64,000 nucleotides of DNA, from the NCBI GenBank assembly GCA_965235115.1, contig OZ249442.1, positions 6,882,001 to 6,946,000 on the forward strand, given 5' to 3'. Source of the stretch: Laetmonice hystrix. Lineage: Eukaryota. The translations under genes and the position numbers were made by a program. The notes below the pieces were generated by a model. It saw only the letters and a program-made list of their open reading frames with translations, searched no databases and was not told the DNA's origin. This document shows, piece after piece, positions 29,070 through 46,199 of this stretch (within the stretch, counting starts at the first letter, position 1; each line of letters starts with the position of its first letter).

Positions 29070-30210
29070 CTGACGGTCGGCAGGGTGTCTGGTGATGGGG
29101 CTGACGGTCGGCAGGGTCTGTCTGGTGATGGGGCTGACGGTCGGCAGGGTCTGTGATGATGGGGCTGACGGTCGGCAGGGTCTGTCTGATGATGGGGCTG
29201 ACGGTCGGCAGGGTCTGTCTGGTGATGGGGCTGACGGTCGGCAGGGTCTGTGATGATGGGGCTGACGGTCGGCAGGGTCTGTCTGATGATGGGGCTGACG
29301 GTCGGCAGGGTCTGTCTGGTGATGGGGCTGACGGTCGGCAGGGTCTGTCTGGTGATGGGGCTGACGGTCGGCAGGGTCTGTCTGATGATGGGGCTGACGG
29401 TCGGCAGGGTCTGTCTGGTGATGGGGCTGACGGTCGGCAGGGTCTGTGATGATGGGGCTGACGGTCGGCAGGGTCTGTCTGATGATGGGGCTGACGGTCG
29501 GCAGGGTCTGTCTGGTGATGGGGCTGACGGTCGGCAGGGTCTGTCTGGTGATGGGGCTGACGGTCGGCAGGGTCTGTCTGGTGATGGGGCTGACGGTCGG
29601 CAGGGTGTCTGGTGATGGGGCTGGCGGTCGGCAGGGTCTGTCTGGTGATGGGGCTGACGGTCGGCAGGGTCTGTCTGGTGATGGGGCTGACGGTCGGCAG
29701 GGTCTGTGATGATGGGGCTGACGGTCGCAGGGTCTGTCTGATGATGGGGCTGACGGTCGGCAGGGTCTGTCTGGGGATGGGGCTGACGGTCGGCAGGGTC
29801 TGTCTGATGATGGGGCTGACGGTCGGCAGGGTCTGTCTGATGATGGGGCTGACGGTCGGCAGGGTCTGTCTGATGATGGGGCTGACGGTCGGCAGGGTAT
29901 GTGATGATGGGGCGGACGGTCGGCAGGGTCTGTCTGATGATGGGGCTGACGGTCGGCAGGGTGTCTGGTGATGGGGCTGACGGTCAGCAGGGTCTGTCTG
30001 GTGATGGGGCTGACGGTCGGCAGGGTCTGTCTGATGATGGGGCTGACGGTCGGCAGGGTCTGTGATGATGGGGCTGACGGTCGGCAGGGTTTGTCTGGTG
30101 ATGGGGCTGGCGGTCGGCAGGGTCTGTCTGATGATGGGGCTGACGGTCGGCAGGGTCTGTCTGGTGATGGGGCTGACGGTCGGCAGGGTCTGTCTGGTGA
30201 TGGGGTTGAC
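29070..30210. repeat. 33-bp (31-bp variant) minisatellite, ~35 copies
   Basis: Unit GTGATGGGGCTGACGGTCGGCAGGGTCTGTCTG. Confidence 0.97.
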
Positions 30211-31685
30211 TGCTGATCGGGCGGCGAGGGACACGCGTAGATCTACAGGGCGACCTCAGTTAACTTTGGGATCTCGTGAAATCAGCAGCCTATAGGATGA
30301 GAAAATTGGTTTCTTATTGACACGATGAAGATTTTATTTACTCATCTGTCTGTTTGATTGTTCACGCAGACGCTGACTGTTTTCGACCTATAAGGCAGTA
30401 TTATGTTAGTTTAGAGCCGTAACGACTCATCATGCCTTCGTCCTTTCCTTTCATCTCTCCCTATGATTTAAGCCCTAGGTCTAACCATTAGAGTCTATAT
30501 TGATAGACTCTATGGTCTAATTGTCTTTAAATTGACCAGAGCAGGCTGTTAGAGTTGCGAATGCCGTCTGATGGGTGTTTCATTCCCAAGTATTTTGCAC
30601 TTATTCATCGGTATTCTAAAGGAACAATACTTTTCAGCTGAACTTTTACTTTCCCCCCAAAATTATACACTAGTATAGGGAAACTCTAGGCCAGGCCAAT
30701 AAGTTTATTTTCAATGTCAGTAACCTAACATCGATTTTTTTCTGGGATATGTACACAAGATGTGAGAGGTAGCCGGGAGGGTGTGAATAGGTTTGGTGGA
30801 GTTGAGTATTAAAGGTATCGTATATGTATACTAGGTTATATAGGGACAGAGAGGGTGAAACAGGATAAGGAAGGTGTGTACTAGGTAAAGCACGGTGGAT
30901 TAGGGTTCAGGGTTGGGGATTATCAGTATACACAGTGAATATAGAGGCGGGCTCAAACGATGGGATATAGGACCCACCTTTACGGTGTATTTGTCACCTA
31001 CCAGACTGCGATACTTACCTGCCTCCATCTCTATATGGGACATACTAGTGTACATTACAGTCCATCCCAACCTACATGTGTCAACACACAACGGCTGCTT
31101 CATTTTTATTCCACGGTGAATCGGGAAGAGTCAATCCAACTTCCACATATTTCCCAACGTACGTGTCGAGAGACCACGATTCGGCAAACTTTTCTTTATT
31201 TGGGAAAAAAATCTAGGTCCATATAGGCTGGTAGTTTGAAACATATATGTTTTGTGTAAATATAAAGTTTAGTGTGTGTGCCCAGTACCTTATTCCTTGG
31301 AATTCCCTGCACCAGATGATATCTTCGTATAGAGTACTTGGTTTTTGTAAGTTTATCTCTTTCAGAAGATGTGTGGAAGAGCTCGTCGAGTTCTGCCACA
31401 CAATGGAATGGTATGTTTGACTAGACAGAGTTTAGTCGCTGGACCGAGCAGCCCGTATTAGTGTTGGTCCACCTGATTCAGCTAACTCAAACAGACAGCC
31501 AGCCCTCATACAATACGGAACCTCTGGCGCGCCAGGCCCAGTTGATTCTCGCTTCATGTTGGAGAAAGTCTTCCTCACCGCTATACTTTAGGTTACCACT
31601 AGGGGAGCTGTGACTGAAGGCGGCAGTAAGACCTGATTTAGGGCGATCGTCACCAGGAAAAGGTTGTGACTTCATATCACTACTG

Positions 31686-32460
31686 GAACATCACGAAAGG
31701 TGCTCCTGACGGACGTCCTAAACTATCTCCTGAGACAGGACATCACGGACATCCTGACGTCCTAAACTATCTCCTGAGACAGGATATCACGGACGTCCTG
31801 AACTATCTCCTGAGACAGGACATCACGGACGTCCTGAACTATCTCCTGAGACAGGACATCACGGACGTCCTGAACTATCTCCTGGGACAGGACATCACGG
31901 ACGTCCTGAACTATCTCCTGAGACAGGACATCACGGACGTCCTGAACTATCTCCTGGGACAGGACATCACGGACATCCTAAACTATCTCCTGAGACAGGA
32001 CATCACGGTCGTCCTGACGTCCTGAACTATCTCCTGAGACAGGACATCACGGACATCCTGACGTCCTGAGCTATCTCCTGAGACAGGACATCACGGACGT
32101 CCTGAACTATCTCCTGAGACAGGACATCACGGACATCCTGAACTATCTCCTGAGACAGGACATCACGAACGTCCTGAACTATCTCCTGAGACAGGACATC
32201 ACGGTCCTCCTGACGTCCTGAACTATCTCCTGGGACAGGACATCACGGACGTCCTGAACTATCTCCTGAGACAGGACATCACGGACGTCCTGACGTCCTA
32301 AACTATCTCCTGACACAGGACATCACGGACGTCCTAAACTATCTCCTGAGACAGGACATCACGGACATCCTGACGTCCTGAACTATCTCCTGAGACAGGA
32401 CATCACGGACGTCCTGAACTATCTCCTGAGACAGGACATCACGGTCCTCCTGACGTCCTG
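31686..32460. repeat. 36-bp minisatellite, ~20 copies, some with an 8-bp TCCTGACG insertion
   Basis: Unit TCCTGAACTATCTCCTGAGACAGGACATCACGGACG. Confidence 0.95.
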
Positions 32461-33401
32461 AGAATGTCCCAAGGAAGATTTGTCTACTGTAGCTGTCGGC
32501 GGATAGCTCTCGTGGATTGTATCTGACAGAGAGGAGGACGTTTCGGATGTGTGTGGTATAACGGAAACCAGCACGACGACGAACCCCCCACGTGGTTCCG
32601 GAATCAGGTAGGCCCAGTTCTCAGACTTACAGAATGAGTTTATAAACCAAGTGTTCCAACCCATCAGCCTTTTCTTATCTCCACCCCAGTTTCTCCAAAT
32701 GGAAGATGTTATTGGATGTTAAGTGTTACGTCATTAGCATCAAGTGTTTCTTGTTTTCTGCGTCTGGCTGCTCCAGAAATACCTTCACCTGCCGTGCCCA
32801 TGATACATGTAGTTCTTTCCTTCCGGTGATCGCTCTGTCCTAACCAGAAACAGTGCAGAGAATGCTGGGCCGTCAGGTCGTTCGGCTCTTTATCTGGTCT
32901 CAGTCTGATACTAGATCAGCACCAGAGATCATAGGATGAAGTGTAACAAGATACAACATCAAAATCTGGCTGGCATACTTCTCCCGGACACCTGGCCACA
33001 AAATTATAACGGTCTGAGGAACGTCTTCATGGCATGAGGCAAGGGGGCATGTGACTCCGTGTTTCCTGTGATCATAACCGAGGGAGAGGTTTTTTGGTAC
33101 CTCTCAGCTCCTTGTAATCATCCATTAGGTTGACCTGCTGAGCAGTCTGTTCTAGTTTATCATTTTCTTCCACCCCCATCTATTTTTTCTGGCCTTTATC
33201 TTGGGGTGTTTTTTATATTATTATTTAATAAAGGCGTGGCAGGCTATGAAGTGACATGAGTGAGGTTTGTCAGGCAGTCCATCTTGTTTAGCTGCTCCAG
33301 CACCCTTGTCATAACAAATTTATTGTGGAGAAATAGTTGAACCTAATACTGGAAACTCACTGCTACTGTGCCACAGTACTCAGGAACAGTCGGACCAGAC
33401 A

Positions 33402-33663
33402 CCCATTGGGGGCGTAGTTACAGGAGGCATTGGGGGCGTAGTTACAGGAGCCATTGGGGGCGTAGTTACAGGAGCCATTGGGGGCGTAGTTACAGGAGCC
33501 ACTGAGGGCGTAGTTACAGGAGCCATTGGGTGCGTAGTTACAGGAGCCATGGGGGGCGTAGTTACAGGAGCCATTGGGGGCGTAGTTACAGGAGCCATTG
33601 GGGGCGTAGTTACAGGAGCCATTGGGGGCGTAGTTACAAGAGCCATTGGGGGTGTAATTACAA
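33402..33663. repeat. 24-bp minisatellite, ~11 copies
   Basis: Unit CCATTGGGGGCGTAGTTACAGGAG. Confidence 0.95.
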
Positions 33664-34626
33664 AGTCTACGTTCACAGAAACTTGTACACATGTAGATTG
33701 GACCCCAGAAACAGTATGTCGGTTTTCTGATACATATTCAATATTGGACAAAATGCTGTAAAATTTATGGCATTGATACTGTATTGTTTTTTAACCCCAA
33801 GGACTGCGGTGTTTAACAGTAGGGGATTATATTGACCTGCAGCAGACAGATTCGTATAAAGTAATAAAACAAAGTACGTTTGATATTATCCCTATGGTGA
33901 ATCGCCTTAGAAATAGTTCGCCGTTACACGACCAGGGGGCGCTGTGAAGGGTTAACTGTAAGGTTATGGGAAGACGTGACAACCCGGATGCAGACAGTCA
34001 TTTATCTGGTCCGAGGCGGAGCGAGTCAGTGATGGGATTAACGGTGAGCCTGGCTGGTCAAGGGTGTGGTCATCCCCTGACCGCTGCCTGCACCAGGTGC
34101 CATCATTGGGCCAGCACCGGTTAAGTCGGACACTGCCCGGGGATCAGGTGCACCAAGCTCGAGATTTAGGAGGGACACTCAAACATTCTTCAGGGCAATG
34201 TTTCCAGTTGGCTATTGCATTCGGTTCTCTGTGCTTATCGAGGAAAATATTCAAGGAAATGTTGGGTATTTTGGCACGCTTTCTAGATGTATAGATTTGT
34301 CGATTCAATAAATAATGTGTATTGGGTGAAGATTGCGGTCGAACTCTCTGGGGCCGTCTTATTGGGTTCTGGAGGTTCTTTCAAGAGTTAAGACCCATAT
34401 ACCACCAGATATGTTACGTTAAACTCTACACGACAGGGAGGATTATGATATTTAATACTCATTAATCTCGATGGAAACCTGAGATATATGGTAATCCCAA
34501 CAGCCTGGGGAGAGTAGGAAGAATCAAGCGGTGTATAGAGTTTTATTACTTGTACCTGTCTATGGAAGAGTATGATTTCAACCAGCATACATTTTTTTTT
34601 TTTTTTTTTTTATTATGCATATTTTG

Positions 34627-34675
34627 ACAGGGGAACCCACTCGACTTGTCAGCCGCCATTAATGTAGGGCCCTGT
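34627..34675 (-). other. 3'-terminal stem-loop of the LINE RNA
   Basis: Sense ACAGGGCCCTACATTAATGGCGGCTGACAAGTCGAGTGGGTTCCCCTGT: ACAGGG/CCCTGT outer stem, CCCTAC/GTGGG inner stem, ~15 nt upstream of the tail. Confidence 0.6.
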
Positions 34676-34866
34676 GATACATTAACGTATTATACACTTT
34701 CACACATACATTCTACATTACCTTGTATGTACAGTATATAGTTTTACACATCCTTCTTAGCACTTAACAATTACATATAATATTTCTGCACTTACACATT
34801 CACTTTCGTATACAATTTAACCCATGCTTCTTAGAGCTTCTTACGAGATAAATCTATCTTTTCCCC

Positions 34867-37728
34867 CTAGTGTCTTTCATTCATGTACATATTATTATAA
34901 TATTTTTTAATCTCTACTTTAAATTCCTTCTTGTCCTTTAGGTTTCTCATGTAAACTGGTAGTTCGTTCCAAAGTGTAGGCCCAGTGTAGCTATTACATT
35001 TCTTAAAATGCTCACTCCTAGGTCTGGGTACTTCTAATAGAACTGCATCATGTGCTCTTGTAATGTTTGATTGAGCTATTCTGGAAGTGTTTTCAAGTAC
35101 CTCAAAGAAGGTAATCTTTTGCATCATAATTAGTCGTCTATATTTACATGGGAGTAACTTTGCTTCCTGGTGTAGCTGAAAAGTATTGAATAATCTATCC
35201 TTGTTCAATGCAATCTTTAACCCATTGTTTTGTATTACTTGCAGTTTGTGTTTATAATATTCAGTACACGTCCCGTTAAAAATGTTACCATATTCGAGAT
35301 ATGGTAGAATCATTGATTTGAATATAGTTAATGCAGTCGTTTTATTTACATATCGTCTTAATTTAGATAACATATATACCTTGTGTCCGGCTTTCTTGAT
35401 ACAATTTTTAATGTGATGATGGAATTGAAGTTTATTGTCGATTACTATCCCCAAATATGTAAATTTGTTAACAAATTCTAGATTATTGTTATTAATACTG
35501 ATATGGATATTTCTATCTTCGTCACTGCTTCTACCAAAAAGCATACATTTCGTTTTCTTTACATTAACTGTAAGTTTATTGTTTATAAACCAAGTATTCA
35601 GTTTATTAATGTCGTCAGTAATTTGTGTTACCAATTCTGGCAAACTAAAACTGTGTGCTACCATAGCTGTGTCATCGGCAAATGCACTTAAGTCTGATTT
35701 GATATCGGAGTCCAATATGTCATTGACATATAATAAGTAGATCAACGGGCCAAGAATTGTACCTTGCGGTATGCCGTAATTGATAACTTTACATTCTGAT
35801 TCAATTTCATTGTGTCTTACAAATTGCTGTCTATCTTTTAAGTATTCTATTATCCATGATTTGCTTTTATCTATTATACCCACATTTTCTAATTTAGTGG
35901 CTAGGATATCATGGTTGATACAATTAAATGCTTTTGCCAGATCCAGGAAAACTATAATGCTGTATTGGCCACTATTCTTATGTTCAAATATTTGGTTTAC
36001 AACTTTGTTGACCGCACCAGTTGTTGACTTTCCCTTCCTGAATCCATTTTGTGAAGATAAAAAGAGGTTATTGCTTTCCATATAGTTGTAGACAATTTTG
36101 TTTACGTGTTTTTCCAAGATCTTTGATGGCAGGGGAGTGTTAGAGATCGGTCTTAAGTTATTCAAATCCGTTGGATCTCCTTTTTTAGGTACTGGGGTAA
36201 CTCTAGCCACTTTAAATGCCGTAGGAATTTGGGAGTTTTCCAGCGAGTAGTTGTAGAGCCTAACAATGATGTCTGGTATTGCATTGAATGCATCGACTAG
36301 GACTCTCGTGCTAACTCTATTTAATCCCGATGACTTTGATAAAGAGATTTCATTCAAGATATTACAAAGACTGTCGACTGTGAATTTGCCAAGGTCTGCT
36401 AATACTGCATTGCTCTTCTGGACTGTAGGTCTGTTGATTGCCGAGGGATGTGGTAATCGGTCGGCTAGATCCTTTCCTATATTAATAAAATAGTCATTCA
36501 TCAGTTCCGTCGCCTCTTTATCTTTACACATGTTACCATTAACTGGATTACGTATTTCATCGATTTTAATATTTGACATCTCCGGTATTAAAGTTTTAAT
36601 ATCTTTCCAGAATTTCTTTTGGTCTTTTTCGTGTTCTTTTAATTTATTCAACATATAGTTTTGCTTAGCATCTCTGACTAGTTTATTGTAGGTTCTCCTT
36701 GCATGGCAGGCCCTATCATAGTTATATTGGGTTTTACTTCTACGGTAAATCCTAAATAAAATATCTCTTTGCAGCTCAAACTCTGTTAGTTCCCTATTTA
36801 ACCACTCGGGTCGTTGGCTTCCAACTTTAACCTTTCTATAGGGGCACATGCGGTCAATTTCAAACTCAATACCTTTGTAGATCATATCCCACATGTCATT
36901 TATATCTTCCAGTAGATCAAGGACTGTCCAATCTAAATTTTTTAATCTACTTTGGAATAGCTCCTTATTATAGTTGCTAAAACGTCTGCAATAAATAAAC
37001 TTCTTATCTCTAACGGTATGTTTCCTTTTTTTGATAATATATACAGGTAGGTGATCGCTAATATTGTAGTTTATGCATCCCGAGCTAAATATGTTCTTGA
37101 TATTGGTAATAACTACATCTATTAAGGTACTACCTTTAAGATGAATTCGGGTATCGTTTTCTATAATTTGTTTTAGTGTATAGTCATCTTCTAAGCCAGC
37201 AAGTAGTTTATACGAATCGGCTTTTTTATCCGAATAATCTAGGTTAAGATCTCCAATGATGACCACTTCACATTTATGTAAATCATTAATAGTGTTTATA
37301 CATTCTCTAATTGTTTCGATAGCTATTCCTGGGGTTCCCTTAGGTGGTCTATAGCAGTTTAATAGAATTATTTTCTTAGCATTATTACCCTTGATAATAA
37401 GGACTTGCAGTTCTATGTGACAATTCGAAATTTGGGTTACTACCTGGAAATTTATATCTTCTTTAACATAAGTGCAAGTACCCCCTCCCCTTTTGTTAAC
37501 TCTATCATTACGAATTATCTGGTATCCTTTAATCTGTACCATTGATGATGGTAATTCAGGTGACAACCATGTTTCACTCAGGCACAGAATGTTCACGTAT
37601 GGGGTAAAGTTATGTACAATGCTATCGAGTTTAGGTAGTAAACTTCTGACGTTGAGATGCATAATTTTAAATCCCTTCATCATTGAGAGCTCTTCCGCTG
37701 ATATGTTTACTTGTTCATTAGTACACAT
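34867..37728 (-). CDS. LINE ORF2: apurinic-type endonuclease + reverse transcriptase, 953 aa, uninterrupted
   Basis: APE motifs HLNVRSL, LSETWL, RNDR..GGG, YRPP, GDLN, LID, SDHLP. RT motifs NLRPIS..SKILEK, QNGFR..KST, FLDLAKAF, GIPQGTILGP, FADDT, KTKCM, YLGIVID. CR1/L2-type tail LEYG, KLQVIQN, GPTLWNELP. Confidence 0.97.
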   Translation of the reverse strand: MCTNEQVNISAEELSMMKGFKIMHLNVRSLLPKLDSIVHNFTPYVNILCLSETWLSPELPSSMVQIKGYQIIRNDRVNKRGGGTCTYVKEDINFQVVTQISNCHIELQVLIIKGNNAKKIILLNCYRPPKGTPGIAIETIRECINTINDLHKCEVVIIGDLNLDYSDKKADSYKLLAGLEDDYTLKQIIENDTRIHLKGSTLIDVVITNIKNIFSSGCINYNISDHLPVYIIKKRKHTVRDKKFIYCRRFSNYNKELFQSRLKNLDWTVLDLLEDINDMWDMIYKGIEFEIDRMCPYRKVKVGSQRPEWLNRELTEFELQRDILFRIYRRSKTQYNYDRACHARRTYNKLVRDAKQNYMLNKLKEHEKDQKKFWKDIKTLIPEMSNIKIDEIRNPVNGNMCKDKEATELMNDYFINIGKDLADRLPHPSAINRPTVQKSNAVLADLGKFTVDSLCNILNEISLSKSSGLNRVSTRVLVDAFNAIPDIIVRLYNYSLENSQIPTAFKVARVTPVPKKGDPTDLNNLRPISNTPLPSKILEKHVNKIVYNYMESNNLFLSSQNGFRKGKSTTGAVNKVVNQIFEHKNSGQYSIIVFLDLAKAFNCINHDILATKLENVGIIDKSKSWIIEYLKDRQQFVRHNEIESECKVINYGIPQGTILGPLIYLLYVNDILDSDIKSDLSAFADDTAMVAHSFSLPELVTQITDDINKLNTWFINNKLTVNVKKTKCMLFGRSSDEDRNIHISINNNNLEFVNKFTYLGIVIDNKLQFHHHIKNCIKKAGHKVYMLSKLRRYVNKTTALTIFKSMILPYLEYGNIFNGTCTEYYKHKLQVIQNNGLKIALNKDRLFNTFQLHQEAKLLPCKYRRLIMMQKITFFEVLENTSRIAQSNITRAHDAVLLEVPRPRSEHFKKCNSYTGPTLWNELPVYMRNLKDKKEFKVEIKKYYNNMYMNERH

Positions 37729-38047
37729 TGGTAAGATACGTGAGATATTTTATACAGTCGAGTCTTCATATACGGGTAGTTCGTTTTGTCAATTTCTTCA
37801 TCTAGGGTTTTACGAATCTTAGTTTGAGAACGCAATGAGGTATACATAGTCATGGGTGAAAGTCTTTCACTGGGTGCATACAAGGTACAAATACAGCACA
37901 TATATACATATATACAGTCAATTCCGGTATCGTCAGTAGGTGAAGGCATATGTTTTCTACAGTCACCAATGACCACGTATGTCCACGGGCAGATACAATG
38001 AGCTGTAACTGTGATGTTGTTACTGTGACATGGTGTCTTTGCTTAGA

Positions 38048-38313
38048 GCACCCCGCTGCCCATATTCCCCAGCGGGAGCTATATGCACACGGGGTACAAA
38101 GGCATCTTACCACAAGATAGGTAGCACTGAGATATTTAAATCAGATGTGTATCTTAGTATAAGCATAGATGTAGGGTATAAGGCACCCCGCTGCCCATAT
38201 TCCCCATCGGGAGCTATAGGCACACGGTGTACAAGATATCCTACAGTAATATAATCCTATGTATATGTGATAAAAAAAATACTTTCGTGCCCATATTCCC
38301 CAACGGGAGCTAT
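38048..38313 (-). promoter_or_regulatory. Three copies of a conserved 26-35-nt motif in the inter-ORF spacer (putative RNA stem-loops)
   Basis: Plus-strand TGCCCATATTCCCCA(G/T/A)CGGGAGCTAT in copies at 38048-38082, 38183-38217, 38288-38313. The repeat is directly visible; function is inferred. Confidence 0.5.
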
Positions 38314-38365
38314 GGGTTTGGTTGACTGACATCCTACCGTAAATCCGAGGATGGCGTGAGTCCTA

Positions 38366-38981
38366 TTAGCGGGGGTGGAGAGTAATGTTCGTTTTGGCGG
38401 CTTTTGCTATGAGGGCGGACCACAGTTTTTGAGTTGCCGTATTTGGATGTAGACCATCATAAAATCAATTGTATTTATTTATCCTGCGTCCGTTGGTTAG
38501 GCTATGTATTGTGTCCATGGTCCATTACGACTTGATTGAGGGTTATAACTCCATCGTTTATGACTGCCTGAGCAGTATCAAAATCTGTTATGTGACCACG
38601 GTACGTGTTGTATACATTAATGTCCAGCCCGGTGGGTTGGCAGATTATAACACATTTGGAGTAACGTTGTAGATATGTTTTCGCCCAGGTAAAGTAATCT
38701 GTTAACACATCTACCATATTTGGTATTTCGGTAAAAGTTGGAGTGATTTTACCAGTTGGCGATTTAGAAGTTAGGTTGTTCACACCGGCCATTAGATATA
38801 TAAAATCGAATGATCCTGACTTCAAATAATGGTCCGCTGCTTTGACTGCTGTAGTAATGGTGGCACCAGGTGTGGTGGAAACTGTGAAGTTAGTCGGGAT
38901 ATTGCGGTTGGCACATTCCAGGTTTATAAAATATTCAAGTCCTCTGCCTCGTGAGTCACATATGAGTAAGGAGGGTGTCAT
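38366..38981 (-). pseudogene. SGNH/GDSL esterase ORF of the LINE, disrupted by a frameshift and an in-frame TGA
   Basis: ATG at 38981. Block I LLICDSRG, block II TTPGAT, block III AGVNNL in the listed frame (stop 38502-38504). The C-terminus continues in the +1 frame as WTMDTIHSLTNGRRINKYN*FYDGLHPNTATQKLWSALIAKAAKTNITLHPR* (TGA 38465-38467, block V DGLHP 38444-38458, stop 38366-38368). Confidence 0.8.
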
Positions 38982-38982
38982 C

Positions 38983-40275
38983 TTACAGATCCTGTCTAAC
39001 CTTTTGGAGTAAATCTCCAAACTTGTTTTGGCCTGGACAGTTGGAGTCAATGCGGGAGGCTTGCATTAGGGTGAGACCACATCCATAGAAGGGGTCGCGG
39101 GTTGCTTCGTACAGTGAGCAGTTCCCGGTGGCCTTGAGTTTCTCCAACAGGCTGGTGTTCTGTTCAAATTTAGCCTTGACAATAGTTTCCAACTTTTCAA
39201 GTTTCTTTGTTGTCCATGCGTCAGTGGTCTTAATTCTTCTTGCAATTTTGTGGGCTTCAAACGGGTCCGTAGTGGCTAGTATAGACTCCGCTAGTACTTG
39301 TTCACCATGTTCCACGGCCTTCTGATGGCAGAATGCTTGCTCAGCACTGTTATATGTGACACCCTTGAGTTCAATATTACATGGGTACATGTTAGACATG
39401 TAGGACTCCTGACCTTGGAAGGCGATACCACTCTGTATATGTAGGGTTTTCGCTTCAGTGAGGGAAAGATTGTGTGGGAGGTATTGGAGGTCAATTTGAG
39501 TGTATCGCCTGCCGTCAATCACAAGGGCCTCTCCTTTCAGTTTGGCATTCAGGTGTTTAATTTTAGCCAGGTTGTATATGTGTTGCATTACATGCCGCCT
39601 TGATTGAGCTTTGGGTGAGAGGTCATCAACAATAGAGATCCTTGCCCAGCGTTGGTGGTCCTTAAGCCTCTTGACCTTGCTGTATACGTCACTCTTTGAG
39701 GTGGTGCGGCTAAGTTGTATTAGAATAGGTCGGGGGTTGGTTCTATTTTTGTTCCTGTCCCCCAGTCTGTAGACAGCACAACAATCAGCTATTGTAGTTT
39801 CAGTGCCCAGATCAGTTAGTAAGTCGCTTACTATTACTTTCACATTTTCTCCATTTCTTTCTGGGATCCCATGTATGATTAAGTTAAACTTGCGTTTGTC
39901 ATTCTCTATCTTCTCTAGTCTACTCTCCAGGGTATCAATACGCTCCACCAGTTGAGAGTTTTCAGCTCCGACGCGCACTATTTGTTTGTTTAATTCTTTG
40001 ATAGTTTCCTCTTGTTCATCTACTTTGGCTTTTATCTCCTTCATTTCTTTAACACTTTCAGAGACTTCGTTCAGCTGTGCACTCATCTGATTCACATTGT
40101 TATTTGTTGTCATCATTAGTACATAGAGGTCTCGTAGGGTCGGCGTATCGTCTGTATCTGACTGGAGGGGTCTAATTGTTGGCGCCTCTCCCGGTAACTC
40201 GCTCACCTCTTTGTCCGTGTTCATATCTATTGTAGGATTCCTGTTTGTAGCCTTGGATCTTGTCCTTTGTGACAT
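38983..40275 (-). CDS. LINE ORF1 (coiled coil + L1-type RRM/CTD) fused to a C-terminal NADAR (YbiA/DUF1768) domain, 430 aa from the first ATG
   Basis: First ATG at 40275 (MSQRTRSK; the track's start at 40344 is GTG). Heptad-rich segment (LNEVSESV...LEKIEND), RRM motifs RKFNLIIHGIPE, YRLG, PRPILIQL, ISIVDDLS. NADAR at 38986-39426: F....YMSNMYP, GVTYNSAEQAF..QKA, AKFEQN..L..KLKATG, LYEATRDPFYGCG, GQNKFGDLLQKVR. Confidence 0.92.
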   Translation of the reverse strand: MSQRTRSKATNRNPTIDMNTDKEVSELPGEAPTIRPLQSDTDDTPTLRDLYVLMMTTNNNVNQMSAQLNEVSESVKEMKEIKAKVDEQEETIKELNKQIVRVGAENSQLVERIDTLESRLEKIENDKRKFNLIIHGIPERNGENVKVIVSDLLTDLGTETTIADCCAVYRLGDRNKNRTNPRPILIQLSRTTSKSDVYSKVKRLKDHQRWARISIVDDLSPKAQSRRHVMQHIYNLAKIKHLNAKLKGEALVIDGRRYTQIDLQYLPHNLSLTEAKTLHIQSGIAFQGQESYMSNMYPCNIELKGVTYNSAEQAFCHQKAVEHGEQVLAESILATTDPFEAHKIARRIKTTDAWTTKKLEKLETIVKAKFEQNTSLLEKLKATGNCSLYEATRDPFYGCGLTLMQASRIDSNCPGQNKFGDLLQKVRQDL

Positions 40276-40796
40276 TTGGATTGTTCTTGGTTCGCACAGC
40301 TTACAGGTTGTCTTGTTGTGGTTCTGGATCTCGTTAAATCTCACAGTAATGTCCCGGTTAGCTAGTTAAAAGTGATTTTCCTGAGAGCCCGCGGTCGACA
40401 CGTCTGGTCACTCTGACGCCATATTTGATTTGAACACTGCAGGGAGGACTGAGAGAAGTTCAGTATGGTTCTCTTGTTGTCCGAAACCTACATCATTTAC
40501 ACGATCTTTATCTATTCATTCTCACCGTATTAGTTCCGAGGCAATGATTGCAGTCAATAGGGGGCTCAGGTCCCATCTTGGTGCCGATGAAAGTAATCGT
40601 TTCGGGTCTGATTGCCTCTCTCCCTTGTAGCAGGCCTTCAGTCAGATATTGTATTCAAGTGAAAGCAGTGTTCAATGCCAGTGTGTTTAAAATAGAACGA
40701 ATCACAAGAGAGAATCAACCGGGGCAGGGGTCACCTAGACTATTTTGGAGATAGTTTACAGATATGCCATCTCGACGTTTAAGCGAGTAAACTAAA

Positions 40797-41111
40797 AATA
40801 GAACTGTCGAGGAGGGCTGATTGTGAATGTTAAGGTAATAGAACTGTCGAGGAGGGCTGATTGTGAATGTTAAGGTAATAGAACTGTCGAGGAGGGCTGA
40901 TTGTGAATGTTAAGGTAATAGAACTGGTGAGGAGGGCTGATTGTGAATGTTAAGGTAATAGAACTGTCGAGGAGGGCTGGTTGTGAATGTTAAGGTAATA
41001 GAACTGTCGAGGAGAGCTGATTGTGAATGTTAAGGTAATAGAACTGTCGAGGAGGGCTGATTGTGAATGTTAAGGTAATAGAACTGTCGGGGAGGGCTGA
41101 TTGTGAATGTT
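40797..41111. repeat. 40-bp minisatellite, ~8 copies
   Basis: Unit TAATAGAACTGTCGAGGAGGGCTGATTGTGAATGTTAAGG. Confidence 0.95.
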
Positions 41112-41278
41112 TTTGTACGATCGGTTGATTCTAGCTCCTGTATACCCGAGGATTTGAGGATTTTTACCTTGACTTTCTCGGGGTTGGTGAGTGGGAATGA
41201 TATTGGGTGATTCCCCGGAAACTTGGATCACCTCTAGTCTTGAAATAGACCTTCTAATTTGACGTCATATATACATCA

Positions 41279-41495
41279 AGGCCGTCCGGGGCGGGGTGGT
41301 GGTGGTCCGGGGTGTCTGTACCTCCCGCCCCCCCCCCCATCCAAAATCAAGTATAGGGCTTGAAATGGATCACTTTTGACATGTAATTTCAGTCCTTATT
41401 TTGTGCTCTAAGATGTGGCCCCCGGACGTCCCCCCTAGCATGGCTTCCCCCGGCCCAGGTGTACCCCCCTCCGTCAGAAAATCGTGCGCACGGCC
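41279..41495. mobile_element. Possible degenerate GC-rich MITE
   Basis: GGCCGTCCG at left vs CGCACGGCC at right, poly-C tracts near both ends; layout resembles the 2991 element. TIR match is only ~6-9 bp. Confidence 0.3.
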
Positions 41496-41638
41496 CGGTA
41501 CATGACCTATGCCATGGTTTACTGATGTTTTCCTAATCCCTTGATGCAGTAATCAGTAAACGTGATCCAGGCGATCATGGTAGGGCATGGAAGATGTTTA
41601 AATATTCTCTCGGTCACGTCATGGCACATACCGGACCC

Positions 41639-42067
41639 CGTTGCTCCTAATCTGCGTAGTTCTTATTCTTAATCTTATTCTTTAAGGCCCTTCTAAGATG
41701 CTTTGAGAGATTAAAGAATGTTGGCGTTGCTTCTGAACCCTCGTATCTGATCGTATCTTATAAATTTAACCTACCAAATCCATTTTGGAGTGTGTGGTTA
41801 CCTAATAAGACACTTGAGCGACATGTTTTAATTAAAAACTTGCATATACGCGACCGATTTCATTAAGAAAAACTTAAAATGTTATTATGATACGTACGAT
41901 AATCATCCTCTCTTACTTCTTAAGACAGCCCCCTGAGGCTGTCTTAGGAAGTAAGAATTTTCACGTTTTTCTACGATAAGATACGATACGAAATAATGTA
42001 GAGCAACACTTGACCGTTATTATCCTAAATTTCTTTAAAGAATGTACTAACGAATCCTGGAGCAACG
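41639..42067. mobile_element. ~430-bp degenerate foldback MITE
   Basis: Several inverted repeats: terminal CGTTGCTCC/GGAGCAACG; ATCGTATCTTAT/ATAAGATACGAT; a 20-bp stem TCTTACTTCTTAAGACAGCC (41911-41930) / GGCTGTCTTAGGAAGTAAGA (41937-41956) with 1 mismatch and a 6-nt loop. Confidence 0.55.
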
Positions 42068-42068
42068 A

Positions 42069-42121
42069 CAGGCGTCAGGCACACAGGCGTCAGGCACACA
42101 GGCGTCAGGCACACAGGCGTC
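42069..42121. repeat. 15-bp tandem repeat, ~3.5 copies
   Basis: Unit CAGGCGTCAGGCACA. Confidence 0.85.
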
Positions 42122-42623
42122 ACCTTGACATGAAAACCTTTATGTTATTGAACAAGTAAATGTACGTCGTCTTGAACACTTCTGGTAGGGTAACTAATAA
42201 ACTCCGATTAAAAAAATGGAATCCTGAATAAGTGCACAATTATTTCATTCAATGTATATGGTTTGAAGTGGTTGAAACACGCGGAGAACTTTATTCTTCC
42301 GGGAGGACAGGGCGTGATAATGTACATCATGCATTGCTTTGATGTACACATCTTCTTCAGACATATATATGTCAGGAATACAACACGGATGTCACTTGTG
42401 GCGTCTTTGTGTTGAGGAGGTAGCTGTTTGTTAGTAAGATCCACATCCAGGCCGGGAGGGGGGCTGCAATCACCAAGCTCAGATTACTGTGGAGGCTGAG
42501 GGATGAAAGCCAGGCTCGGGTGTCCAATTTGTCTAAGCGCTTTTCATCAAAATGAACTTTCCTTGGAAGTGTGAAATGTCACAGGTAAGTGGCACATGGA
42601 TGTAGGAAAGTGTTTCTGACCTT

Positions 42624-43448
42624 TCAGTGTTTCAGAGTTGGGCAATGATATTGATGTCCATTCCGTGTTTGTAACAGGTCAGTGTTTCAGAGTTGGGCAA
42701 TGATATTGATGTCCATTCCGTGTTTGTAACAGGTCAGTGTTTCAGAGTTGGGCAATGATATTGATGTCCATTCCGTGTTTGTAACAGGTCAGTGTTTCAG
42801 AGTTGGGCAATGATATTGATGTCCATTCCGTGTTTGTAACAGGTCAGTGTTTCAGAGTTGGGCAGTGATATTGATGTCCATTCCGTGTTTGTAACAGGTC
42901 AGTGTTTCAGAGTTGGGCAATGATATTGATGTCCATTCCGTGTTTGTAACAGGTCAGTGTTTCAGAGTTGGGCAGTGATATTGATGTCCATTCCGTGTTT
43001 GTAACAGGTCAGTGTTTCAGAGTTGGGCAATGATATTGATGTCCATTCCGTGTTTGTAACAGGTCAGTGTTTCAGAGTTGGGCAATGATATTGATGTCCA
43101 TTCCGTGTTTGTAACAGGTCAGTGTTTCAGAGTTGGGCAATGATATTGATGTCCATTCCGTGTTTGTAACAGGTCAGTGTTTCAGAGTTGGGCAATGATA
43201 TTGATGTCCATTCCGTGTTTGTAACAGGTCAGTGTTTCAGAGTTGGGCAATGATATTGATGTCCATTCCGTGTTTGTAACAGGTCAGTGTTTCAGAGTTG
43301 GGCAATGATATTGATGTCCATTCCGTGTTTGCAACAGGTCAGTGTTTCAGAGTTGGGCAATGATATTGATGTCAATTCCGTGTTTGTAACAGGTCAGTGT
43401 TTCAGAGTTGGGCAATGATATTGATGTCTATTCCGTGTTTGTAACAGG
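42624..43448. repeat. 55-bp minisatellite, 15 copies
   Basis: Unit TCAGTGTTTCAGAGTTGGGCAATGATATTGATGTCCATTCCGTGTTTGTAACAGG. Confidence 0.97.
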
Positions 43449-43578
43449 ATGCCCGGAAACTATCGGTACAATGTACGGAGTGCTTTCAATCCTTGACACT
43501 AGGTGGCGCCTCGATATGAGTAACCGTCAACAATTCTCCAGCGTTTTCACTCACACTCAGCCAGTGACAGCAGCGCCA

Positions 43579-44932
43579 ATACAACACACACCCCATGGTC
43601 ATGATACACCAGACACCCCATGGTCACGAGACAACACACCCCATGGTCACGACACAACCCACACCCCATGGTCATGATACAGTACACACCCCATGGTCAC
43701 GAGACAACACACACCCCATGGTCACGACACAACACACACCCCATGGTCACGATACAACACACCCCATGGTCACGACACAACACACACCCCATGGTCACGA
43801 TACAACACACCCCATGGTCACGACACAACACACACCCCATGGTCACGATACAACACACCCCATGTTCACGAGACAACACACACCACATGGTCACGATACA
43901 ACACACACCCCATGTTCACGAGACAACACACACCACATGGTCATGATACAGCACACACCCCATGGTCATGATACAGCACACACCCCATGGTCACGAGACA
44001 ACACACACCCCATGGTCATGATACAGCAGACACCCCATGGTCACGATACAACACACACCCCATGGTCACGACACAACACACACCCCATGGTCACGATACA
44101 ACACACCCCATGTTCACGACACAACACACACCCCATGGTCACGATACAACACACACCCCATGGTCACGATACAACACACCCCATGTTCACGACACAACAC
44201 ACACCCCATGGCCACGGTACAGCACACACCCCATGGCCATGATACAGCACACACCCCATGGTCATGACACAACACACACCCCATGGTCACGATACAACAC
44301 ACACCCCATGGTCACGATACAACACACCCCATGTTCACGACACAACACACACCCCATGGCCACGGTACAACACACACCCCATGGTCACGGTACAGCACAC
44401 ACCCCATGGTCATGATACAGCACACCCCCCATGGTCACGATACAAGACACACCCCATGGTCATGAAACAGCACACACCCCATGGTCACGATACAGCACAC
44501 ACCCCATGGTCACGGTACAGCACACACCCCATGGTCACGATACAACACACAACCCATGGGCATGATACAACACACACCCCATGGTCATGATACAGCACAC
44601 ACCCCATGGTCACGATACAGCACACACCCCATGGTCACGGTACAGCACACACCCCATGGCCATGATACAGCACACACCCCATGGTCACGGTACAGCACAC
44701 ACCCCATGGTCACGATACAACACACAACCCATGGGCATGATACAACACACACCCCATGGTCATGATACAGCACACACCCCATGGTCACGGTACAGCACAC
44801 ACCCCATGGTCACGATACAACACACACCCCATGGTCACGATACAGCACACACCCCATGGTCATGATACAGCACACACCCCATGGTCACGAGACAACACAC
44901 ACCCCATGGTCACGATACAGCACACACCCCAT
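43579..44932. repeat. 23-25-bp minisatellite, ~55 copies
   Basis: Unit ACA(A/G)CACACACCCCATGGTCA(C/T)GAT. Confidence 0.95.
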
Positions 44933-45654
44933 AAATCAGAATGATTTAATCTTTCATGATAACCATGCACCTTTCACACTCACCAGCAAACTGTCGTGGA
45001 TATAGCACTAAGGGGTTGGAAATGCACATAGTTATATTTTCAGGAATGATAACTAATTTATAGCTGTTGGTTTTGGGTGACTTGAGTTATTTTCATGTCG
45101 TGAAAGGTTACTTTTAGGTGTTGTCATGTGGTAGTCTCTCCAGGAGTATGCGATTACAGCAAACGTTACTACCATCTGGTGGGACACAGGTTTGACCTCG
45201 GGTCAGCTGACCCTTGCTCATGGCCATACACAGAGGTCAAACTGACCGTCAGGTGTGTCACCATGCTGACCAGTGATGGCCTGACCCTCCCCTGACAGCT
45301 GCCCCCTGAGATGAGCTCCGGGTAAAGCTCCCCCAGGCCAGGGCGGGGCACCCTGAGGACGTCTATCAGAGAGGGATCAAATAGGATCGACAGGGGGAGC
45401 GTCTCGCTGTGATTGAGGTCTCGCTATCAGCATGGCCCTGGGAGTTCACAGGCCGTGACGTGCATGTAGCCACATCACACAGTGATTCTGTTTTAAAAAA
45501 AAGCTTTTGATAATACGCATTGCTCTAGGAGTCGAGGAATCGCACAATACGTTTCCTGTAAACAACAGCCTCAGTTTGTTTGAGGATTGTGGACTGGCTG
45601 CATCTCCCAGTTGAGATCTCTATACGTTTTATAACCGACTCTCAATATTGGCGA

Positions 45655-45855
45655 NNNNNNNNNNNNNNNNNNNNNNNNNNNNNNNNNNNNNNNNNNNNNN
45701 NNNNNNNNNNNNNNNNNNNNNNNNNNNNNNNNNNNNNNNNNNNNNNNNNNNNNNNNNNNNNNNNNNNNNNNNNNNNNNNNNNNNNNNNNNNNNNNNNNNN
45801 NNNNNNNNNNNNNNNNNNNNNNNNNNNNNNNNNNNNNNNNNNNNNNNNNNNNNNN
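45655..45855. other. Assembly gap (201 N)
   Basis: Run of N. Confidence 1.
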
Positions 45856-46199
45856 GCCTTGCCCCCTGCCCCCCTCCCCCCTCCCCGCGAATCTCGCATT
45901 TGTAAACTTTAAGTGTAATGAGAAGAATTTGTTCCTGGTTACTTTGTTCAATGTCCTGTCAAGTGCCACGTAAGGCTTCTGGCTGAGACCGGGGTCCGAT
46001 GTGATTGCAGAAATGTGCGTTATTTATTGCGAGGTGCTCATTACGTTGGGAGACAAAGGCAGTGTTAGAGCGAGCAGCGTCGGTGGACGGTATTAGCATA
46101 GAAATGAGGTTGATGTGATTTATAGTGTCATCAAGCATGACTGTGTGGATCACGTGGGGGATGACATGATGCCGGTATCACCAACTCCCATCATCCCCT

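Follow-up and report, generated by a model that had tools for sequence, protein, structure and literature searches.

A LINE of Laetmonice hystrix with a predicted NADAR domain at the C-terminus of its L1-type ORF1 protein

The DNA analysed here, a stretch of 64,000 nucleotides from Laetmonice hystrix (the window), contains a LINE of the APE type that is young, ends in a poly(A) tail and has three open reading frames (ORFs). Its first ORF is predicted, from profile matches and a structural model, to encode an L1-type RNA-coating protein in which a trimerising coiled coil, an RRM and a CTD are followed by a C-terminal domain of the YbiA/NADAR fold. LINE ORF1 proteins are usually viewed as RNA chaperones, and their accessory modules are few: a zinc knuckle, a PHD or an esterase. 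The ORF1-NADAR fusion is family-wide and old, not an accident of one copy, and its NADAR domain is under purifying selection, constrained as strongly as the RNA-binding core across lineages that are saturated for synonymous change. The best explanation, to which we give a probability of roughly 0.45, is that the NADAR borne by ORF1p removes base-linked ADP-ribose during LINE retrotransposition. The parts of the element are listed below, with the basis of each assignment in brackets.

34591–40432, minus strand: whole LINE element, 5.84 kb, from 5' end to poly(A) tail (copy alignment).
40276–40432, minus strand: 5' UTR (sequence common to copies, upstream of the ORF1 ATG).
38983–40275, minus strand: ORF1, 430 aa plus TAA stop, predicted L1-type (type II) ORF1p with C-terminal NADAR.
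39892–40137, minus strand: coiled coil, residues 47–128 (single long helix in the AF2 model, aligning with the L1 ORF1p trimer coiled coil).
39661–39885, minus strand: RRM-like domain, residues 131–205 (AF2 beta-alpha-beta pattern; Foldseek to 2w7a, the L1 ORF1p central RRM, and to 2ykp).
39481–39636, minus strand: CTD, residues 214–265 (Foldseek to 2ykp/2yko and to 2ldy, the RRM-CTD of L1 ORF1p).
39448–39480, minus strand: conserved linker LPHxLSLxxAK, residues 266–276 (alignment of ORF1s).
38986–39447, minus strand: NADAR domain, residues 277–430, with E312, K319 and E390 (Pfam; sequence and fold matches to 8BAU and YbiA).
38502–38981, minus strand: stand-alone SGNH/GDSL esterase ORF, truncated in the window copy (intact homologous copies, motifs, AF2 fold).
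38057–38316, minus strand: three copies of a 29–52-nt motif, in the spacer that separates ORF2 from the esterase ORF.
34867–37728, minus strand: ORF2, 953 aa, with APE endonuclease at ~37039–37656 and reverse transcriptase at ~35443–36192 (Pfam, profile matches).
34591–34866, minus strand: 3' UTR, with AATAAA at 34610–34615 and a poly(A) run at 34592–34611.

ORF1 is an uninterrupted minus-strand frame with its ATG at 40275 and its TAA stop at 38985–38983; the 453-aa numbering of the initial annotation came from a mechanical extension of this frame to a GTG at 40344. That annotation had placed a NADAR domain at the C-terminus, and the assignment holds at the level of sequence and of fold. The Pfam NADAR profile (PF08719) matched ORF1 with E=4.4e-26 and 92.5 bits (cut-off 35.1) over profile positions 9–162 of 163, and phmmer against PDB sequences returned the Phytophthora NADAR (8bau_A, 6e-13) and E. 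coli YbiA (2b3w, 4e-4). The AF2 model of ORF1 (mean pLDDT 86.6) matched 8BAU with E=1.9e-10, a TM by target of 0.74 and an rmsd of 2.1, and YbiA 2B3W with a TM by target of 0.70.

The model also resembles the trimer of human LINE-1 ORF1p (2ykp/2yko), with E about 2e-7 and a TM by target of 0.61–0.64. Foldseek matched 2ykp, 2yko and 2ykq with E values between 2e-7 and 8e-6, as well as 2w7a and 2ldy. The N-terminal helix gave many weak Pfam coiled-coil matches. PF02994 (Transposase_22) is absent from the full ORF1 match list at E≤0.1 and is not among the matches listed at E≤10 (25 of 72 families); the relationship to type II ORF1p rests on fold. Together, the AF2 model, Foldseek and Pfam bear out the proposed order of coiled coil, RRM, CTD and NADAR. 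Human and mouse LINE-1 ORF1p (2ykp, 2yko, 2w7a, 2ldy) have the first three of these domains in identical order but end after the CTD without an enzyme domain, whereas the window protein continues into the NADAR through a linker in which P267 never varies and L266, A275 and K276 each reach 90% conservation or more (alignment A1).

The active-site residues were surveyed in 23 diverged ORF1s (in-genome and related) that are 26–41% identical to the window ORF1, with residues mapped from 8BAU. E390 aligns with the YbiA-type catalytic glutamate E125 of 8BAU, D394 with D130 and Y397 with W133, in agreement with the initial annotation, which had noted a retained glutamate at 39108 (E390), its aspartate partner and a tyrosine at the usual tryptophan. 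E312 corresponds to E43 of the Phytophthora enzyme and to the catalytic E88 of the E. coli C7 NADAR. Both E312 and E390 are present in 23/23 ORF1s, and in 91% and 93% of the public representatives, respectively. Other ADP-ribose-contact positions are similarly kept: W354 in 22/23, an aromatic residue at 397 in 23/23, D394 in 20/23 and, at positions 346 and 358 alike, K/R in 20/23. The window copy has K319, the equivalent of the phosphate-binding lysine (K50 in Phytophthora, K95 in the E. coli C7 NADAR). Among the families, K/R occupies this position in 10/23 and Cys in 9/23; for the public representatives the K/R share is 75%.

Synonymous change (dS) is saturated in comparisons between families, and the dN of the NADAR part (0.18–0.49) is mostly equal to or lower than that of the RRM/CTD. 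The comparison of dN and dS that had been proposed as a check gave an omega of ~0.1 where it could be computed. No part of ORF1 is better conserved than the NADAR, whose mean identity of 0.41 compares with 0.39 in the RRM/CTD and 0.23 over the N-terminus and coiled coil; its identity co-varies with that of the RRM/CTD (Spearman 0.72).

That the fusion might exist beyond a single copy had been raised, and the genome and public data agree that it does. This genome yielded no fewer than 150 NADAR matches that exceed the Pfam cut-off, mostly in open frames of 430–480 aa, together with at least 93 scored ORF1 matches. Among the diverged families retrieved, ORF1-NADAR was present in 20/20 and a homologous ORF2 lay downstream in 18/20. 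Public data yielded at least 281 clusters at E≤1e-30, and RRM/CTD and NADAR occur in one protein in 114 of the best-scoring 150 public representatives. The gene order is identical in two other assemblies. Related proteins come from the abalone Haliotis rufescens, the one taxon named among 20 cluster representatives looked up, and from Atlas clusters with the label Annelida. When the NADAR part was used by itself in a word-based search, five fragments came back, all of similar ORF1s. The AFDB cluster matches showed 30–33% identity to entries with eukaryote-style accessions and ~25–27% to short DUF1768 entries. Two open frames of 1650 aa with a NADAR are also present in this genome.

The ORF1-NADAR fusion itself is not a first sighting. 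The initial annotation knew of no description of a NADAR in a LINE; there is one, a single sentence on Repbase Crassostrea gigas LINE families (labelled Tx1) whose ORF1 carries a YbiA-family NADAR (PMC12477816, Genome Biol 2025), and it was the sole description of a LINE ORF1-NADAR found in our literature search. The oyster elements likewise have a YbiA-type NADAR on a LINE ORF1 in a lophotrochozoan. The coiled coil/RRM/CTD core, the separate SGNH esterase ORF, the conservation of catalytic residues, the purifying selection, the hundreds of copies and the public clusters are reported here and are absent from the oyster note. As regards the Tx1 label, no Tx1 hallmark was seen among the features examined in the window element: insertion sites differ between the copies compared, and no Pfam match to zf-RVT/CCHC was found in the element.

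Phytophthora nicotianae NADAR (8BAU) and E. coli YbiA (2B3W) have the fold, both glutamates and most ADP-ribose contacts in common with ORF1-NADAR, but they are stand-alone cellular enzymes, whereas ORF1-NADAR is fused to a transposon protein predicted to coat RNA. YbiA also acts on riboflavin intermediates. In ORF1-NADAR the equivalent of the adenine-stacking Y84 of 8BAU is lost, and the equivalent of its K50 varies among families, although the corresponding K95 is essential in the E. coli C7 NADAR. The substrate could differ from ADP-ribosyl-guanine because of the loss of the Y84 equivalent; most residues that contact pyrophosphate and ribose in the ADPr complex are retained. An independent capture of a YbiA-type NADAR is known in Ectocarpus Gypsy LTR retrotransposons, which belong to another class of element and carry it at the N-terminus of Pol; its closest reported relatives are bacterial (PMC12477816).

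Removal of G-ADPr from both DNA and RNA has been shown for every NADAR family tested, and C-ADPr is likewise removed by enzymes of the NADAR and YbiA types (PMC11543638, PMC11125620, PMC11833690, PMC12945103). Many ORF1p molecules would bind the RNA that encodes them, so that the NADAR enzyme would be brought in cis to the LINE RNP. Its putative activity there is hydrolysis of base-linked ADP-ribose on LINE RNA, nascent cDNA or single-stranded target DNA; this chemistry appears the most likely one because every NADAR tested removes ADP-ribose from guanine. With the ADP-ribose removed, the template would stay readable for target-primed reverse transcription. Candidate sources of the mark are a host restriction enzyme, the animal's own CARP-1-like toxins or microbial genotoxins.

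A counter-defence role of ORF1-NADAR is plausible by analogy with DarT1-NADAR (DarG1) antitoxins and with phage NADARs that act against DarTG1, in which a NADAR of a selfish or mobile genome undoes nucleic-acid ADP-ribosylation (PMC11543638, PMC11825919). The likeness has limits. The last-strand catalytic residue is Glu in the window protein, as in the YbiA-type branch, in contrast to Asp in BC4488/DarG1 and His in phage; the neighbours are an SGNH esterase and an APE-RT with no adjacent DarT, and the host is a eukaryote. In its broadest form, which we regard as speculative and rather improbable, the idea would be that base ADP-ribosylation restricts retrotransposons in some invertebrates and that a large, old LINE lineage answers with ORF1p-NADAR as an eraser coating the RNP. 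The writer in bivalves might then be the CARP-1-like guanine ADP-ribosyltransferases, and the arrangement, if true, would be an animal counterpart of the phage NADARs that counter DarT1.

Several other readings were weighed against ADP-ribose removal by ORF1p. That the similarity is due to chance, or that a host NADAR exon lies beside an unrelated transposon, is scarcely credible, since the Pfam score is 57 bits above the cut-off and accompanied by fold matches, the NADAR frame is continuous with the RRM-CTD, and the arrangement recurs across hundreds of copies as well as in further assemblies. The NADAR could instead be a non-catalytic module, either a reader of ADP-ribose or nucleotides or a part that caps the ORF1p trimer structurally. 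The variability of the phosphate-binding Lys would fit such a module, as would the rigid conservation of the CTD linker, which suggests a fixed architecture; however, pure binding modules seldom retain catalytic glutamates, and both are kept in 23 of 23 in-genome ORF1s and in 91–93% of public representatives, so that we consider this very unlikely.

If the domain is an active N-glycosidase, its substrate may still not be a defence mark. It could be an NAD- or ADP-ribose-derived group on the element RNA, for example a non-canonical cap or an RNA-metabolism by-product. For the oyster and Ectocarpus NADAR elements RNA processing of transposition intermediates has been proposed (PMC12477816), RNA processing is also a role suggested for viral NADARs, activity of NADARs on RNA is documented, and the variable K319 together with the lost adenine-stacking residue would permit a substrate other than ADPr-guanine. 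We nevertheless think this unlikely, as NADARs are not known to have such a substrate and the majority of the pyrophosphate- and ribose-contact residues are retained. The domain might also repair collateral damage, instead of opposing a defence aimed at transposons, by erasing base ADP-ribosylation that stems from genotoxins (ScARP/Scabin-like) of the environment or of symbionts, or from CARP-1-like toxins which the animal itself stores. Such a role has been proposed for cellular NADARs of marine invertebrates, and the occurrence of ORF1-NADAR in oyster, with related proteins in abalone and in the Annelida-labelled clusters, is consistent with it. Yet it is puzzling that a transposon and not its host should carry a repair enzyme in hundreds of families, and no writer was found in this genome with the two Pfam toxin-ART families Enterotoxin_a and ADPrib_exo_Tox, though the control genomes were equally silent; we hold this reading to be quite doubtful. 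The search for a writer bears in like manner on the counter-defence reading.

Judged from sequence conservation, a domain of the ADP-ribose-removing hydrolase type appears to have been retained for long on the RNA-coating protein of a transposon in hundreds of lineages, which suggests that retrotransposition in these animals is sensitive to some chemical mark on RNA or DNA. What animal NADARs do physiologically is a question that the ADP-ribosylation field has yet to settle (PMC11125620, PMC12945103), and ORF1-NADAR LINEs offer an abundant natural test case for it with a clear selective context. Since the published record consists of one sentence, the anatomy, scale and constraint shown here should be of use.

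Full-length copies of the element on C19 and C1 are 99% identical to the window element and have unrelated flanks. At least 40 copies, 96–100% identical, are present in the genome, and the majority are 5'-truncated and have the 3' end in common. These full-length and truncated copies and the poly(A) tail are the reasons for inferring recent activity. In the four copies compared the flanking sequences are unrelated, so the insertion sites differ; target-site duplications were not clear in three copies, with at most 5–6 shared bases, in one copy. Among sequencing runs, the sequence was found only in those of DNA type, all from one study. GC content falls from 0.45 in ORF1 to 0.34 in ORF2, and a chimera of two different elements was considered on this account. 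The idea was dropped because the 99% copies span both parts and an equal GC step is present in other families.

As the initial annotation had it, ORF1 lies upstream of an APE-RT ORF2 in the same LINE, which is confirmed by Pfam and by the 99% copies; it had, however, overlooked the separate SGNH esterase ORF that sits between the two. The esterase ATG is at 38981, one base past the ORF1 stop. A 34-bp deletion near 38525 truncates the ORF in the window copy, and in the C19 and C1 copies it is intact (216 aa from the ATG). A programmed frameshift fusing ORF1 to the esterase was rejected because the relation between the two frames differs among families. By motifs and predicted fold the middle ORF is an SGNH/GDSL hydrolase. 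Blocks I, III and V (GDS, GxN(D), DxxH) are present; all 8 families compared share D9, S10, G66, D187 and H190, and the Asn of block III is kept in most of them. Its AF2 model has a pLDDT of 93, and the best 50 PDB matches are essentially all SGNH/GDSL-fold hydrolases. The Pfam match to Lipase_GDSL_2 (16.6 bits, E=0.011) is below the cut-off of 32.9, and a profile search gave a weak match to the ZfL2-1 ORF1 esterase (4c1b). The esterase-type (type IV) ORF1p of CR1/L2 LINEs such as ZfL2-1 likewise places an SGNH esterase 5' of ORF2, but there the esterase is ORF1 itself, whereas here it is a separate small ORF after a type II ORF1-NADAR. Metcalfe & Casane (PMC4120745) encountered esterase ORF1s in vertebrate subgroups only; the stand-alone esterase ORF widens the ORF1 module repertoire beyond vertebrates.

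ORF2 matched the Pfam families RVT_1 (5e-29), Exo_endo_phos_2 (1e-5) and Exo_endo_phos (4e-3). Its profile found L1 ORF2p in the PDB at 1.4e-46 over APE and RT, and R2 at 1e-31; neither this search nor phmmer against the PDB separates Tx1 from CR1/L2, and the names of the Atlas clusters were generic. The motifs at its end, N-x-RSL...SETWL and LWNxLP...FK, are suggestive of CR1/L2.

When window positions 30001–44000 were compared to genomic copies by blastn, the segment 34591–40432 was found to be 99% identical to copies on C19 and C1 of the same genome, with unrelated flanks. Since this identity spans both ORF1 and the APE-RT-encoding ORF2, the two belong to one 5.84-kb element, a LINE on the reverse strand with the following features.

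ORF1: 38983–40275 (−), uninterrupted, first ATG at 40275, stop TAA at 38985–38983, 430 aa
Esterase ORF: 38502–38981 (−), truncated in the window copy
Spacer motif of 29–52 nt, three copies: 38057–38085, 38192–38220 and 38288–38316, within the ~640 nt that separate the esterase ORF from ORF2
ORF2: 34867–37728 (−), 953-aa APE-RT; Pfam RVT_1 (5e-29), Exo_endo_phos_2 and Exo_endo_phos

The element ends 3' in AATAAA and ~20 A. A DNA search of the genome recovered at least 40 copies at 96–100% identity, most of them 5'-truncated to differing extents and sharing the 3' end, the pattern that recent target-primed reverse transcription leaves behind; their insertion sites vary from copy to copy. No zf-RVT or CCHC match was found in the element with Pfam, and the terminal motifs of ORF2 may be CR1/L2-like. 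The repeated spacer motif might promote ORF2 translation.

The ATG-to-stop frame of ORF1 matches the coordinates of the initial annotation; a mechanical ORF listing extends it upstream to a GTG (38983..40344, −). Its C-terminal 142 residues match the Pfam NADAR model PF08719 over nearly the whole profile (E = 4.4e-26; 92.5 bits, cut-off 35.1), and phmmer against PDB sequences retrieved the Phytophthora nicotianae NADAR (8bau_A, 6e-13) and E. coli YbiA (2b3w, 4e-4). An AF2 model built from an alignment of 23 diverged homologues (mean pLDDT 86.6) divides ORF1 as follows.

Residues 1–42: disordered N-terminus
Residues 47–128: single long helix
Residues 131–205: RRM-like unit
Residues 214–265: second small domain
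Residues 277–430: alpha/beta domain

In the PDB, the top Foldseek match was 8BAU (E = 1.9e-10, TM by target 0.74) and the next was YbiA (TM by target 0.70); behind them came the human LINE-1 ORF1p trimer chains 2ykp, 2yko and 2ykq (E 2e-7 to 8e-6, TM by target ≤0.64), the L1 RRM (2w7a) and the RRM-CTD (2ldy). Pfam, phmmer, AF2 and Foldseek thus bear out the anatomy first read from the sequence, i.e. coiled coil, RRM, CTD and NADAR, and the ORF1-NADAR feature is real.

The fusion is not confined to a single copy, and its generality was understated at first. Searching this genome with the ORF1 protein gave at least 93 scored matches among 908 candidates (28–43% identity), nearly all reaching the NADAR end and lying in open frames, and the Pfam NADAR model gave at least 150 matches over cut-off among 741 candidates, most of them within 430–480-aa open frames. 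All 20 diverged families fetched encode ORF1-NADAR, 18 of them with a homologous ORF2 downstream. The same gene order was found in two other assemblies: in one, a 441-aa ORF1-NADAR is followed by a 214-aa ORF and a 950-aa RVT ORF, in the other a 559-aa ORF1-NADAR by an APE ORF. Exhaustive HMMER searching of 1.84 billion cluster representatives identified 281 proteins at E ≤ 1e-30 and 2391 at E ≤ 1e-10; RRM/CTD and NADAR share one protein in 114 of the 150 best-scoring representatives (median length 463 aa). ESM Atlas clusters of 415–489-aa NADAR proteins are labelled Annelida wherever the phylum is known. Four long proteins (P0145, P0220, P0251 and P0279) carry 3–7 tandem NADAR stretches, P0145 being XP_048255699.1 of Haliotis rufescens (4240 aa, seven stretches); they may stem from host genes or from transposon copies that were merged. 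Two NADAR matches in this genome (G000:C1:23020367-23020792 and G000:C8:28856722-28857147) sit in open frames much longer than ORF1 (1660 and 1649 aa); ORF1 might be fused to ORF2 there, or the element might be of a different type.

The ADP-ribose contacts of 8BAU (PMC11543638) were transferred via the phmmer alignment to 23 ORF1s that are 26–41% identical to the window ORF1.

Conservation of 8BAU contact positions in 23 ORF1s
E312 (8BAU E43): 23/23
E390 (E125, the YbiA-type Glu): 23/23
W354 (W89): 22/23
Position 397 (W133): aromatic in 23/23
D394 (D130): 20/23
Position 346 (R79): K/R in 20/23
Position 358 (R93): K/R in 20/23
K319 (K50; K95 of E. coli C7 NADAR, essential there): K/R in only 10/23, Cys in 9/23
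Position 351 (Y84, adenine stacking): aromatic in 0/23

Of 147 public representatives, 91% retain the glutamate at E312 and 93% that at E390, and 75% have K/R at the lysine position. No other part of ORF1 is as well conserved as NADAR. Between-family dS is saturated; NADAR dN (0.18–0.49) does not exceed RRM/CTD dN in most family pairs, and omega is ~0.1 where computable. Pairwise NADAR and RRM/CTD identities track each other (Spearman 0.72) and strong outliers are absent, which fits one old NADAR capture followed by co-inheritance with the RRM/CTD.

A third ORF of the element was missed by the initial annotation. A stretch of 34 bp near 38525, present in the C19, C1 and C5 copies, is missing from the window copy; this loss truncates the esterase ORF and leaves ORF1 and ORF2 open. 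Intact copies hold a 239-aa frame after ORF1, 216 aa from its ATG. Its sequence similarities are weak but consistent: Pfam Lipase_GDSL_2 matches at E = 0.011, and a profile search picks up GDSL proteins along with 4c1b, the esterase of ZfL2-1 ORF1. Of the 50 PDB entries that best match the AF2 model (pLDDT 93), essentially all are SGNH/GDSL-fold hydrolases; a few designed proteins and a single metagenomic esterase are the exceptions. The D-S of the GDS block, the G and, mostly, the N of block III and the D-G-x-H-P of block V are conserved across eight diverged families. The element is therefore predicted to encode two accessory hydrolases, NADAR and an SGNH esterase. The ORF1 stop and the esterase ATG (38981) are one base apart (TAAGATG, 38979–38985), and in 8/8 families (the window and seven others) this ATG is placed at ~−10 to +60 nt relative to the stop codon of ORF1; such spacing points to coupled translation by termination-reinitiation. 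This ORF is present between ORF1 and ORF2 in about half of the 20 diverged families, in a frame that varies relative to ORF1; this speaks against an ORF1/esterase frameshift fusion and argues for a separate cistron.

At the protein level, the window ORF2 and its counterpart in family L043 share 57–59% identity, yet for ORF1 (29%) and the esterase (27%) no family is less similar to the window element than L043. In family L041, ORF1 is sister to that of L043, but ORF2 is only 27–31% identical to the window's. From these identities, it looks as if the 5' module (ORF1 and esterase) has been exchanged against ORF2 between lineages.

The claim that NADAR in a LINE is new was overstated. NADAR domains in Ectocarpus Gypsy elements and oyster LINE ORF1-NADAR fusions have been reported (PMC12477816, Genome Biol 2025); the architecture is thus already catalogued and noticed, without analysis, and ours is a further case of a barely described kind. 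We found no other description of NADAR in ORF1 in the literature, and the DUF1768 literature found was unrelated. Metcalfe & Casane, surveying ORF1 types, include no ORF1-NADAR and report esterase ORF1s from vertebrates only (PMC4120745). The oyster elements are labelled Tx1; unlike that clade's hallmark, the window element is not site-specific.

Removal of ADP-ribose from guanine, in DNA as well as RNA, is documented for members of every NADAR family, and removal from cytosine for NADAR- and YbiA-type enzymes, one of them from a sponge (PMC11543638, PMC11125620, PMC11833690, PMC12945103). Trimeric ORF1p coating LINE RNA in cis would place many enzyme copies on the RNP, where the best-supported activity would be to strip the RNA template, cDNA or single-stranded target DNA of base-linked ADP-ribose. 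With the lysine variable and the adenine-stacking residue gone, the substrate could also be another one. Searching this genome for a writer of base ADP-ribosylation with two Pfam toxin-ART families (Enterotoxin_a and ADPrib_exo_Tox) gave no match, and control genomes were equally silent in that search. CARP-1 homologues occur mainly in bivalves (PMC12945103), which is suggestive in view of the oyster ORF1-NADAR report. As the candidate function is directly testable, ORF1-NADAR is of moderate to high interest.

G+C is consistently higher in ORF1 (~0.45) than in ORF2 (0.34–0.41) of one element, in the window and in L027, L028, L030, L035, L041 and L043. Adjoining the element, the forward strand at 43408–44865 holds a tandem repeat array with overlapping ORFs in several frames encoding His/Thr/Pro-rich repeats (HTPHGHDTT...), and a run of N at ~45650–45900 marks an assembly gap or masked stretch.
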